NCBI GenBank assembly: GCA_965240325.2
Contig: OZ251225.1
Coordinates: forward strand, 682,001-746,000
Direction of reading: 5' to 3'
From: Rebecca billardiae RCC1528
Taxonomy: Eukaryota > Protista > Haptophyta
Length of the DNA: 64,000 nt
Shown here: in pieces, positions 42,290 to 46,305 of the stretch
Position numbering within the stretch: position 1 is the first letter of the stretch
How the letters are laid out: each line of letters starts with the position of its first letter
Notes under the pieces: generated by a model
Databases searched by the model: none
The model's input: the letters and a program-made list of their open reading frames with translations, nothing else
Told to the model about the DNA's origin: nothing
Position numbers and translations under genes: made by a program

Positions 42290-43534
42290 TCAGTACACGT
42301 GCCGGTCCGAGCACTCGTCATCATCCAGCTCGTCGTCGTCGTGCAGCCCGACCACACCCAGCCGGTGCTCGTCGTCGTCCGACGCCTCGTCGACTTCCTC
42401 CTCGTCCGAGGGTGGCGGGGGCGCGTCCTCCTCCTCTGCCGGATGCTCGTCCGGGCCCTCCTCAACAATCACGCGCTCGTCTGCTGCGCCGTCCTCGGTC
42501 GGGACAGTGGCGTCGACGGCGCCGAGCGCGGGCGCAGGGCTCTCGCCCGCACTGGGGGCTGCGCTGCCCGCCGCCGCAGCAGCAGTGCTCGCTCGTGCTG
42601 TGCCCAGCGCAGCACTCGCGCGGGCGAGGTCGTCCGCAGTGGCCACAGCCTGGTTGCGAGCCAGGCCGCGCAGGATGCCTGTCGTGTCGGCCGGTAGCCT
42701 TGCGACGGTGGGCACGTCCGGCGCCGCCGGTGGGACGGCCGGGCGTACCGAAGGCGCCTCGGCTCCAGCCGCTGCGGTCGGCGCCGGCCGTGCGGCGCGC
42801 GCCGCCTGCACCTGCGCCGCGATCGCCTGCAGCTCAGTCGGGTTGGCAGGCAGCCGGCGGGAGAGCGCGGCGGTGATCCTCGCCGGCTGCTCGCGCTCCT
42901 CGCGCTTGAACTTGAGCTTGATCTGTCGCCTCGTGCGGTGCGGCATGATCCGCTCGATCAGCGAGAAGTCTGTGCCGTAGCGCGAGAGCGCCGAGTAGAA
43001 GGCCTCGGTCTCCTCGGCCGTCCACTTCTCCGAGGGCGTTTTGTTCATGTACGTGCCGTACGTGACGGAGCTATTGCCCTCGATCACGAGCGACGGCTCC
43101 TCGAGCCGCGCGTCCGGCCGGCCCGCGGTGATCTCGAGCGACTGCTCGTCAATCACGATCCGTCCGTCGATGATGCGCACCTGAGGCGCAAACACGGGAT
43201 CGTCGTCACCTGGCCCGGGGCCGGCGGCATCCTCGTCACCATCGGCGGCGGCGCCGGCAGCTCCGGAAGCAGCGCCGCTCGCGCCATCCGCGCCGCCGGC
43301 TACGCGCGGGAAGGACCCCCCACCGTGTGCGCTGCAGCAGCCGCGGATCGCGCCGCGGTACGCCGCCTCCTCCTCAGCGTCCTGGTCAGCGAGTGTGCTG
43401 TCGAGCGGCTGCTTGCGCTTCCTGCGCGACTGGCGCTCGAGCGCCTCCTTCATGGGGACGCCTTTCGGGCACTTCCGGATGAGCTCGCTGACCGTCATGT
43501 GCTGCACGCTCTCCATGGCCTCCTGGGCGTTCAT
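42290..43534 (-). CDS. BDP1: TFIIIB subunit B'' (Bdp1) homologue, SANT/Myb domain
   Basis: APQVRIIDGRIVIDEQSL and KWTAEETEAFYSALSRYGTDFSLIERIMPHRTRRQIKLKFKREER are characteristic Bdp1 motifs; ATG at 43534. Confidence 0.9.
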   Translation of the reverse strand: MNAQEAMESVQHMTVSELIRKCPKGVPMKEALERQSRRKRKQPLDSTLADQDAEEEAAYRGAIRGCCSAHGGGSFPRVAGGADGASGAASGAAGAAADGDEDAAGPGPGDDDPVFAPQVRIIDGRIVIDEQSLEITAGRPDARLEEPSLVIEGNSSVTYGTYMNKTPSEKWTAEETEAFYSALSRYGTDFSLIERIMPHRTRRQIKLKFKREEREQPARITAALSRRLPANPTELQAIAAQVQAARAARPAPTAAAGAEAPSVRPAVPPAAPDVPTVARLPADTTGILRGLARNQAVATADDLARASAALGTARASTAAAAAGSAAPSAGESPAPALGAVDATVPTEDGAADERVIVEEGPDEHPAEEEDAPPPPSDEEEVDEASDDDEHRLGVVGLHDDDELDDDECSDRHVY

Positions 43535-43707
43535 CGTGGCCGACAGTAGAGCACGATGGCGACCGCCCGCGCGCACGGCAAAAAAGAGTCCGCGCACGCG
43601 CGCGCGCGGCGCCCGCCGCCACGCGAGGCTCTCGCGAGATTTCAGATTATTTTGGCGTCGCAGCATGGCTCCGCAGCCGTGACTCAGGAGCACCCTTGCA
43701 AGGGCCC

Positions 43708-44940
43708 ATGAAGCGAGGACGCGACGACAGCGTCCGTGGCCTCGCGGGCAAGTATGCAGAGCTTCACCCGTGGCACCCTTCGCCCGTGCTCTTCGAGCGC
43801 GTACTCTACCCTTCGCTCGAGCATGCGTACGTGGCCGCAACCGCAGGAGACGGCGCGCAGGCAGCAGACTTGCGCGCGCGCCTTGCCAGTGCAGAGTCCG
43901 TCACGGCGTCGAAGGCCCGCTCGATGGGCTCCCCGGACACGCTCGACACCAAGCGCCGCCTGGCCGCCATGCGCGCGCTGCTCCGCGACAAGATGATGCG
44001 CCACCCGCGCTGCAAGCAGCTGCTGCTGGAGACGGTCGACGCGCGCATCTACCACGACGACGACACGGCCGACGAGTTCTGGGGCGTGCGCTCGGGCGTG
44101 GGCTCGAACCACCTCGGCGTGCTACTCGAGAGCGTGCGCACCGAGATCTCCGCGGGCAAGCAGGTGAGCACCTGGGTCAGCTCGGTCTGCGAGCCGCTCC
44201 CCGCAGACTCTGTGCCGGGCGTGAGCGTGAGTGTCGAGCGGAAGGGCGTCGAGATCGACAAGCGCGCGCTCGACGGCAGCCGCGCGTTCCACACGGTGGG
44301 CAAGTTCGAGTCGTCTGACTTTGTGCTCGAGCACGTGTCCAGCTCGCGCAAGCACGCCCTCCTTGCCTTCGACGCGCGCTCGACCAGTGGCCTCGCAGTG
44401 ATCGACCTCGGCTCGAAGGCAGGCACCTGGCTCGACGGCGCGCGCGTCGCGCCGCTCGTACCCACAGACCTGCCGACTGGCGCCGAGCTGGTGTTCGGCC
44501 AGGGCTCCTCGCGCGTGTTCAGGGTGAGCGTGGACGTGCACCGCCTGATCAGCGCGCTCGAGCAGCGCCGCGCCCAGCTGCGCTCCGAGGTGGCGCAGCT
44601 CGAGCGCGACGTCGCTGACGAGAAGAGCGGCTTTGGCCTCGTCGCGTCCAAGCGGGTCGACCCGAGCCGGCGCACGTGCTTCGTGGGCAACCTGCCGTAC
44701 GAGGTGGAGGAGGGCGACGTGAAGGAGCTCTTCGGCGCGTATGGCGCGGTGTCGCGGGTGAACTTGCCGCTCGACCGCGAGACGAACAAGCCGCGCGGCA
44801 TCGCCTTTGTCGAGTTCGCCCACGCGGCGGATGCGCACGCTGCGTGCGCGCTCTCGGGCGAAGACTTCCTCGGCCGCACGCTCAAGGTGGAGTTGGCACA
44901 GCCATCGGCACCGAGGCCAGCGCCGCGCAGCCCGCGCTGA
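43708..44940 (+). CDS. NADAR (YbiA-like) - FHA - coiled coil - RRM fusion protein
   Basis: NADAR: YPSLEHAY...MRALLRDK...LLLET...DEFWG...GSNHLGVLLESVR. FHA: SSSRKHA...VIDLGSKAGTWLDG. RRM: CFVGNLPY (RNP2) and RGIAFVEF (RNP1). Single intronless ORF. Confidence 0.85.
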   Translation: MKRGRDDSVRGLAGKYAELHPWHPSPVLFERVLYPSLEHAYVAATAGDGAQAADLRARLASAESVTASKARSMGSPDTLDTKRRLAAMRALLRDKMMRHPRCKQLLLETVDARIYHDDDTADEFWGVRSGVGSNHLGVLLESVRTEISAGKQVSTWVSSVCEPLPADSVPGVSVSVERKGVEIDKRALDGSRAFHTVGKFESSDFVLEHVSSSRKHALLAFDARSTSGLAVIDLGSKAGTWLDGARVAPLVPTDLPTGAELVFGQGSSRVFRVSVDVHRLISALEQRRAQLRSEVAQLERDVADEKSGFGLVASKRVDPSRRTCFVGNLPYEVEEGDVKELFGAYGAVSRVNLPLDRETNKPRGIAFVEFAHAADAHAACALSGEDFLGRTLKVELAQPSAPRPAPRSPR

Positions 44941-46305
44941 TGAGCGGGCCGTCGATGGGCCCGGCCAGGCGGCCGCTGCGGGACTAGCCGCTTGCGACTC
45001 GGCGGCGCTGCCGCCCTGCATGACCCGCGCGCCGTCGCCCGTGCCGCATCCGATTATCCGAACCGAATCATATCGGCAGTATAACATCTATTATATATAT
45101 ATAATAATATGACCGCGTTCCGCGGTCCTTTTCCGTAGAACGAACGTAGTTCAGGGCCCGCGGTGGCGGTGCACCCTCCATCGCAGTCGTCTATTGACAG
45201 ACCCGGAGTTGCATGCCCGTACAACTAGACTCCAGCGGCGCGCCGCCGCCCGCCGCGCCGGGCGCGGGCCCATCGCACTTCGCAGCCGCCGGCGCGGCGC
45301 CGATTGTGTACAGGCGGATCCGACGAGGCGTGATCGACGCATGAGCGCGACTCCACGTGCACGCCAGGCCACGCGAAGCTGACAGCCAGGGAGCACGGTG
45401 CGGGGCCGCGGATTCGTTCGGGCCGCTGCTGCTGACTGACCGACTGTGGCGCTGTCCGCCGCGGGTCACCGCGCACCGGCAGCGCCAGGATAGTACAGTA
45501 GATGATTTGCACTGGTCCGAGTAGGGTTCGACCAGCGCCTGCGCGACGGCCGACAGGCGGGCGCGAGGCGTGATCGACGCATGAGCGCAACTCTACGTGC
45601 ACGCCAGGCCACGCGGAGCTGACAGCCCGAGGGAGCACGGTGCCGAGGTCGGAGGTGCGAGCGGGCACCAGTGTCCAGTCACGGATCGTTCGCGCACGCC
45701 GCGCGTGCACGGGCTGACACACCTCGATCAGGCTCGGCACGCGTTGCAGAGGCACAGCCAGCTCTGGGGACGTCACGCACCACCGTCGCCCGCGCAGCTC
45801 GTCCTCCTCGTAGAGTACCGTGCAGTTCCGAGGCGTAGCCCTCGCTCAGAGTCGACCGTCGACGATGGATGGACTCGGATCGTCGGCGCTCCCCGGAAAG
45901 GCATGGCAAGGGCGGCGCGTGGTGAAGTCGAAGACTCAGAGATCGATCAGTCCGGCATCAGGCGCCGCTGCCCCCGAGCTTGCGAGAGCCCGAATACAGG
46001 GCGGCTGCCGCGGCGCGGCCCGGCCGGGCGCCCCGGCGACCGGGCGCGCGGCCGCGCGCAGGCATCGACACGGGGCGGCGGGGGCGCGCGGAGTGAGCGG
46101 GGGCACGAACGCGATGTCGACGGCAGTCGGGACCCGCCGCAGCCGCGCGCTCCAGGCGCCACTCGCCGCGCGCACCTGCCCATCGCCGTCCTCACCCGTC
46201 GGTCGCTCGTGGCTGGCGCCTCCTGAGCTCCTGTCGCCGCAGCCGCGGCGTGCAAACGCGGGCCGCACACGCCGCGCGGGCGCCGCGCCCCCTCCGGCTC
46301 CGACC

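Follow-up and report, generated by a model that had tools for sequence, protein, structure and literature searches.

A NADAR-FHA-RRM gene of the haptophyte Rebecca billardiae is a derived member of an uncharacterised protist protein family

A single open reading frame (ORF) of the haptophyte Rebecca billardiae RCC1528 joins a NADAR domain to an FHA domain, a helix and an RNA-recognition motif (RRM), and the question raised by this locus is what a NADAR domain might do in such company. The gene lies in a stretch of 64,000 nucleotides (assembly GCA_965240325.2, contig OZ251225.1, positions 682,001 to 746,000 of the forward strand), which we call the window and whose positions are counted from its first letter. 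An earlier note made from the letters of the window had proposed an enzyme recruited by phosphorylation to remove ADP-ribose or damaged bases from RNA or single-stranded DNA. We find that the window protein is a short, derived and trimmed member of a conserved, uncharacterised protist family. Its function we read tentatively: it may be an RNA-tethered, phospho-docked factor with a remodelled N-glycosidase of altered substrate recognition.

The ORF is on the + strand and runs uninterrupted from its first ATG at 43708 to a TGA stop at 44938-44940, encoding 410 amino acids; the frame itself opens upstream at TTG 43696. At the ∼70% GC of this genome long chance ORFs are frequent, and many overlapping ones are present in the ORF list of the window, so the case for a gene rests on homology and not on ORF length. 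The orthologues P0002-P0004 align with the window protein from end to end at 57-58% identity. Their ORFs, located on three other contigs (for example P0002 in L001 and P0003 in L008), are likewise uninterrupted and colinear from start to stop, which argues for both the intronless state and the chosen ATG. On this comparison we regard the NADAR-FHA-RRM gene as genuine and, as had been claimed, intronless. Its parts are as follows, with residues aligned where indicated to 8BAU, the Phytophthora nicotianae NADAR structure with ADP-ribose.

43708..44940, + strand: complete coding sequence, 410 codons plus TGA without intron (ORF list, sequence and end-to-end orthologue alignment)
43729..44187, + strand: NADAR (YbiA-fold) domain, residues ∼8-160, Pfam core 21-147 (43768-44148)
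43819..43842, + strand: active-site helix E38-H-A-Y-V-A-A-T45, with the Glu of EHxxQAxK retained, Gln replaced by Val and Lys by Thr; aligned to E43..K50 of 8BAU
43942..43947, + strand: L79-D80, in the place of W89 of 8BAU, the Trp that contacts diphosphate; alignment good to plus or minus one residue
44053..44082, + strand: end of the last strand and following loop, with H116 at the subfamily-defining Glu/Asp/His site, D117-D119 and then D122-E-F-W125
44218..44535, + strand: FHA domain, residues 171-276, Pfam core 196-264, with G198-K199, S213-R214-K215-H216 and S236-K-A-G-T240
44539..44616, + strand: long single helix and candidate coiled coil, residues 278-303 (26 residues), between FHA and RRM; AlphaFold2, predicted local distance difference test score (pLDDT) of the block ∼93-94
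44668..44901, + strand: canonical RRM, residues 321-398, with RNP2 C-F-V-G-N-L and RNP1 R-G-I-A-F-V-E-F

All three domains passed their Pfam cut-offs: NADAR (PF08719, residues 21-147) with 41.9 bits against a curated cut-off of 35.1, and with 44.4 bits when the same locus was met in a genome scan; FHA (PF00498, residues 196-264) with 47.1 bits against 20.7; and RRM_1 (PF00076, residues 325-393) with 70.8 bits against 20.7. The AlphaFold2 model of the full-length protein, made from a 60-sequence alignment, has a mean pLDDT of 92.3, a predicted template modelling score of 0.77 and three folded domains. These results, together with the modelled helix at 278-303, bear out the proposal of the earlier note that one ORF joins NADAR, FHA, a coiled coil and RRM, and the motifs it named (EHAY, VAAT for QAxK, DEFWG, GxNHLG, GK and SRKH) can all be read in the sequence. 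Further motif residues that we read are H39, A40 and Y41, D122-E123-F124-W125-G126 and G132-S-N134-H-L-G137.

How widespread is this layout? A word-based search returned seven clusters with NADAR, FHA and RRM together, and a profile search of 1.84 billion representatives, each standing for one 50%-identity cluster, added more than 55 further proteins that matched from NADAR to RRM in one stretch. Within the 60-sequence family alignment Pfam identified NADAR in every member, and FHA and RRM_1 in 59 each. Exact-sequence look-up put names to several members, namely CBN76756.1 / D8LBP7 from Ectocarpus siliculosus, annotated as 'conserved unknown protein', a protein of Mallomonas annulata (EukProt), several entries of Polarella glacialis labelled 'FHA domain-containing protein', and KRX10356.1 from the ciliate Pseudocohnilembus persalinus, labelled 'SMAD/FHA domain'. 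Transcripts of relatives are represented by MMETSP and TRINITY ORFs marked complete, and a recheck of the MMETSP and Ectocarpus-type proteins confirmed their domain content. A full-text literature search found no description of the NADAR-FHA-RRM layout, an earlier mention in the NADAR-defining paper (de Souza & Aravind 2012) being possible. Judged from these sequences, the layout belongs to a family with many members, found in stramenopiles, dinoflagellates, ciliates and a haptophyte, publicly visible as 'unknown' proteins and with no characterised member. The earlier note knew the architecture from no characterised protein, and this held, the relatives all being annotated as unknown and no describing paper having been found; but the architecture it had thought unfamiliar is not rare, given the more than 55 cluster representatives.

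In a quick maximum-likelihood tree the window protein and P0002-P0004 form a group with a support of 100 inside a stramenopile-plus-haptophyte clade, on a long stem of 1.05 substitutions per column, with P0005-P0007 and P0024 as its sister. Most relatives carry an N-terminal extension of ∼50 residues, which the window clade does not have. Arg-rich tails with many RS, RD or RE dipeptides follow the RRM in 36 of the 60 relatives and resemble those of SR-like and U1-70K-like proteins; the tail is only 6-12 residues long in the window clade (12 in the window protein) and is not SR-like. As a separate observation, in P0008, a database protein of the sister clade, the FHA end and the helix give way to a long Arg/Ala/Pro-rich stretch that cannot be aligned; this gene model from a metagenome assembly appears to be frameshifted or wrongly called.

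To which class of NADAR does the domain belong? The family profile matched E. coli YbiA (2B3W) with an E value of 5.6e-29. When a NADAR-only AlphaFold2 model (pLDDT 90.8) was used as the Foldseek query, 2B3W was again the best match, with a template modelling (TM) score by query of 0.70 over 154 columns, followed by 8BAU with 0.58; 8BAT, the DarT1-associated Geobacter NADAR, reached 0.49 with an E value of 5.2, which is not significant. In an Atlas structural search the best match of the NADAR part was a mostly phage NADAR cluster (TM 0.79 by target). As modelled, then, the fold, a helical core with a small sheet on either side, is of the bare YbiA type and not of the DarT1-antitoxin type. Likeness to the DarT1-cognate antitoxins, a comparison that the earlier note had drawn, was rejected: the N-terminal beta1-beta2-alpha1 extension is missing, His stands at the position of the last-strand Asp, and the 8BAT match is non-significant. 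Nor is DarT the neighbour here, the upstream gene of this eukaryotic genome being a Bdp1-like Myb gene.

That YbiA is the closest solved structure, and that some relatives go by the name 'ribA/ribD-fused uncharacterized protein' in databases, might suggest a damage-control N-glycosidase of the riboflavin pathway (YbiA/COG3236 type) that became fused to other domains incidentally. We consider this very improbable. The riboflavin equivalog TIGR02464 was rejected, with a score of 33.3 bits where the cut-off is 73.7, the NADAR domain is joined to FHA and RRM and to no riboflavin enzyme, and a canonical NADAR, at 163.8 bits, is found elsewhere in the genome, in which the scan identified three NADAR loci.

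The active site was read by transferring the ligand contacts of 8BAU (PMC11543638) to the window protein through alignments. Four contacts are kept, E43 as E38, D130 as D122, W133 as W125 and R93 as R83 or R84. Lost are K50, replaced by T45, and W89, which corresponds to L79 or D80 in an alignment uncertain by one residue; E125 is changed to H116, R79 to Ser, and the Gly-Arg pair (G78-R79) is not conserved. E43 and K50 of 8BAU are E88 and K95 of the E. coli C7 NADAR, this lysine binds adenine and diphosphate, and K95A abolishes efficient hydrolysis of guanine-ADP-ribose (PMC11543638). The counterparts of E38, D122 and W125 are critical for the glycosidase activity of YbiA and are mutated in SNA-3, a nematode SL1 trans-splicing factor with three NADAR domains (PMC9303266). 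The last-strand residue defines the NADAR subfamilies, being Glu in the YbiA type, Asp in the BC4488 type and His in the phage type (PMC11125620); in our alignment A3, H116 shares a column with the Glu of both canonical NADAR paralogues in this genome. His116 and Asp118 are gained at active-site positions in the window protein, and R144 and W156, beyond the Pfam core, are invariant or nearly invariant. On these alignments the pocket appears to have kept or renewed its ribose end (E38, H116, D122 and W125) and to have had its ADP-holding end dismantled (T45 and L79/D80). Canonical de-ADP-ribosylation is unlikely for the window copy because Lys and Trp are replaced. Where the earlier note had treated the catalytic motifs as retained apart from VAAT, E38, D122 and W125 are indeed kept, but the VAAT change is not harmless, since the essential Lys has become T45, and the Trp is lost as well.

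Across the family these positions vary. The Glu of the EH motif is present in 38 of 60 members. At the Lys position 32 of the 60 have K and 15 have R (K or R, 47/60), the four window-clade proteins have T/V/V/L and the dinoflagellate-type clade mostly has Q; at the Trp position Trp is found in 54 of 60, L/V/V/V in the window clade and F in one other member. At the last-strand position most members have an aromatic residue (Y/F/W), whereas the sister clade has Ala and the window clade His. By clade, Glu, Lys, Asp and Trp are retained in the stramenopile-plus-haptophyte clade; the ciliate-type clade has lost the EH-motif Glu (S/T/F/Y) and changed Lys to Arg and D130 to Asn; and the dinoflagellate-type clade has lost the same Glu (Q/R/K) with Lys mostly replaced by Gln. 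As far as the alignments tell, the two residues that hold ADP-ribose are specifically lost in the window sub-clade, and catalytic or ligand residues of the NADAR domain have been swapped at least three separate times in the family while the whole architecture was kept. Because of this repeated replacement a non-catalytic role is a serious rival: the NADAR domain could be a pseudoenzyme, a binding or structural module in an RNA-binding, phospho-docking adaptor. The loss of Lys and Trp in the window clade fits this, as does the independent loss of the EH-motif Glu in two alveolate clades (S/T/F/Y/Q/R) with the architecture intact, which indicates that the family tolerates catalytic loss; the subfamily-defining last-strand Glu is absent family-wide, and in SNA-3, too, the conserved residues are missing from NADAR domain 1 (PMC9303266). 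Against a pseudoenzyme are the retention of E38, H39, D122, W125, G126 and N134, the gain of His116 and Asp118 at active-site positions, and the selection acting on the domain. The window protein is identical to its three close orthologues at 55-60% in NADAR, 54-63% in FHA, 40-55% in the linkers and helix, and 68-69% in RRM, and the Nei-Gojobori ratio of nonsynonymous to synonymous change (dN/dS) between P0002 and P0003 is 0.145, 0.249, 0.42 and 0.082 for the same four regions; the GC content at third codon positions (GC3), 0.84-0.95, makes absolute dN/dS unreliable, and only the comparison between domains was used. The NADAR domain is still under purifying selection and is constrained at least as much as FHA, although a structural role would give the same result. 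Weighing both sides, we regard the pseudoenzyme as possible, and as less probable than a remodelled enzyme.

What would the other two domains bring? By sequence the closest PDB matches of the FHA domain are TbPar42 (2N84), NIPP1 (2JPE) and kanadaptin (4H87). Foldseek, which bore out the beta-sandwich fold, returned kanadaptin at the top (E 2.8e-11), with human spliceosome chains, Arabidopsis DDL and yeast Pml1 also found, and no FHA domain of PNKP or aprataxin was among the matches listed, by sequence or by structure. Among these matches the domain is most like the nuclear RNA-processing FHAs (kanadaptin/NIPP1/DDL/Pml1). NIPP1 and SNIP1/Pml1 act at the spliceosome. In aprataxin and PNKP an FHA domain brings in an enzyme that cleans nucleic-acid ends, which is the logic of a 'repair' enzyme recruited by FHA, and their FHA domains are of a distinct type without the SRxH histidine. 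The kind of FHA domain and the RS/RD-rich tail usual in the family suggest RNA-processing machinery, not DNA repair. As a rule the whole family has Gly-Lys for Gly-Arg, SRxH is kept, and the third-loop Asn is Ala (A238) in the window protein and in some other clades; phosphothreonine binding by this domain is plausible from its sequence. The RRM has an aliphatic residue at position 3 of RNP1. A fused module resembling the RES complex (Pml1/SNIP1 FHA with Snu17/RBMX2 RRM) was considered, the spliceosome chains among the FHA matches being presumably SNIP1 or RBMX2, and was rejected as unsupported, the sequence neighbours of the RRM being generic.

These results bear on the function first proposed for the gene, an active de-ADP-ribosylase recruited by phosphorylation to guanine- or cytosine-linked ADP-ribose on RNA or single-stranded DNA. 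NADARs hydrolyse guanosine- and cytidine-ADP-ribose on RNA (PMC11833690, PMC12945103), which makes the idea reasonable for canonical family members, and all NADAR families tested do so on DNA and RNA (PMC11543638, PMC11833690, PMC12945103). His at the last strand is the state of the phage NADARs, of which that of T4 is active on guanosine-ADP-ribose, the RRM would supply affinity for nucleic acid, and PARP-type writers of ADP-ribose are present in the organism, its genome having at least 11 PARP-type catalytic loci. For the window protein, however, we judge this function unlikely. The Lys that efficient hydrolysis requires (K50/K95) has become Thr, W89 is lost and G78-R79 not conserved; there is no resemblance to the DarT1-cognate NADARs (8BAT, TM 0.49, E 5.2); the FHA domain resembles those of RNA processing, with no DNA-repair FHA among the matches listed; and the lineage has no known endogenous writer of base ADP-ribose. 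The original proposal is thus partly supported: its domains and motifs hold, and standard de-ADP-ribosylation has become less likely for this copy with T45 and the loss of Trp.

We return to the preferred reading, an RNA-tethered and phospho-docked factor with a remodelled N-glycosidase. In it the RRM would hold single-stranded RNA, the FHA domain would bind a phosphothreonine site on a partner protein of nuclear RNA processing, and the NADAR domain, a module of the ribosyl N-glycosidase type, would thereby be brought to RNA. In the haptophyte sub-clade altered substrate recognition would be expected rather than standard guanine-ADP-ribose hydrolase activity, because the Lys and Trp that grip ADP are replaced while those that surround the scissile ribose have been retained or renewed. 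The nuclear RNA-processing context, the phospho-dependent docking and any catalysis are here inferred. Several points weigh against this reading. The E. coli C7 NADAR requires for efficient hydrolysis the very Lys that is missing here (PMC11543638), so that the window domain may be inactive. Much of the 'splicing-like' argument is built on the RS tail and the N-terminal extension, and the window clade has neither. In the FHA domain Lys and Ala stand where Arg and Asn are canonical, and the assignment of this domain to a type stands on modest score differences. The nearest PDB relatives of the RRM (nucleolin, CstF-64, PABP and U2AF65) are generic, and dN/dS is distorted by the GC3 of 0.84-0.95.

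What eukaryotic NADARs do, and whether eukaryotes ADP-ribosylate bases endogenously, is described in the field as open (PMC11125620, PMC12945103). A bolder proposal, which we hold to be a long shot and less probable even than the de-ADP-ribosylase, is that in the stramenopiles, alveolates and Rhizaria (SAR) and in haptophytes this family, docked through phosphothreonine, is the missing endogenous enzyme that clears nuclear RNA of base-linked ADP-ribose (or of a related ribosyl adduct), and that the window sub-clade was retargeted, by loss of Lys and Trp and with a phage-type His, to another adduct such as a phosphoribosyl remnant. No enzymes other than NADARs are known to remove guanine-N2- and cytosine-linked ADP-ribose from DNA and RNA, and a family in which NADAR is joined to a phospho-reader, an RRM and usually also to an RS tail offers a concrete place to seek base-ADP-ribose chemistry on RNA in algae and protists. 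Canonical members of the Ectocarpus or Mallomonas type would be better test objects than the window protein, which is informative as a natural variant without the ADP-holding residues.

Upstream of the gene in the window are the following features.

43538..43707, no strand: intergenic region shared with the divergent Bdp1-like gene, presumed to act as a bidirectional promoter and to include the 5' leader
42290-43537, - strand: Bdp1-like gene (Myb_DNA-bind_7, Pfam 100.6 bits), with ∼170 bp between the divergent start codons

The contig of P0002 (L001:5494-6627) also carries a Myb_DNA-bind_7 gene, ∼2 kb away, which suggests a loose conserved linkage of this gene with the NADAR-FHA-RRM gene. Within the presumed 5' leader we noted an upstream ORF of five codons (ATG GCT CCG CAG CCG TGA) at 43665-43682 (+), out of frame with ATG 43708. 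An AT-rich island (TATATATATAATAATA-like) at 45078-45112, ∼150 bp past the stop codon and in surroundings of ∼70% GC, is a candidate 3'-end or termination signal common to the next gene.

Two further loci with NADAR domains were observed. At L005:1162-2820 (+), which is G000:C25 ∼1211623-1213281, one ORF of 552 amino acids combines a canonical NADAR (160.5 bits) with a C-terminal 3'-5' exonuclease of the RNase_T/DEDDh type (83.6 bits) and is another fusion of NADAR to a nucleic-acid enzyme. At L007:39-1310 (-) and L007:1117-2190 (+), together G000:C5 ∼2367256-2369407, a stand-alone NADAR (36.7 bits) lies head to head with a PARP-catalytic-domain gene (48 bits), whose protein has repeated 'HDFCGRTHA'-like Cys/His motifs; the two are a possible writer-eraser pair.

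Among known systems, E. coli YbiA (2B3W) has the same fold as the window NADAR, and its EH-motif Glu and DxxW are kept there; it differs in that this bacterial enzyme stands alone and has the QAxK Lys, the Trp and the last-strand Glu, where the window protein has Thr, Leu/Asp and His and is fused to FHA and RRM. The Phytophthora nicotianae NADAR (8BAU) is likewise eukaryotic and not linked to DarT, and its E43, D130, W133 and R93 have counterparts in the window, whereas K50, R79, W89 and E125 stand against T45, Ser, L79/D80 and H116 (TM 0.58). The DarT1-associated NADARs of E. coli C7 and G. lovleyi (8BAT) belong to the same superfamily, but the window protein is without their beta-beta-alpha N-terminal extension, their last-strand Asp and a DarT neighbour. 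With the phage NADARs of the gp30.3 type the window protein shares, as aligned, the last-strand His, and the mostly phage Atlas cluster is its best structural match, although phage NADARs are single-domain proteins. C. elegans SNA-3 is a eukaryotic NADAR protein of nuclear RNA processing in which some domains lack the conserved catalytic residues (PMC9303266); it is nematode-specific and has no FHA or RRM, and the likeness is drawn at the level of the domain. Kanadaptin, NIPP1 and SNIP1/DDL/Pml1 have no NADAR domain, and the window FHA has Gly-Lys for their Gly-Arg, but by both sequence and structure theirs are the closest FHA domains among the matches listed.

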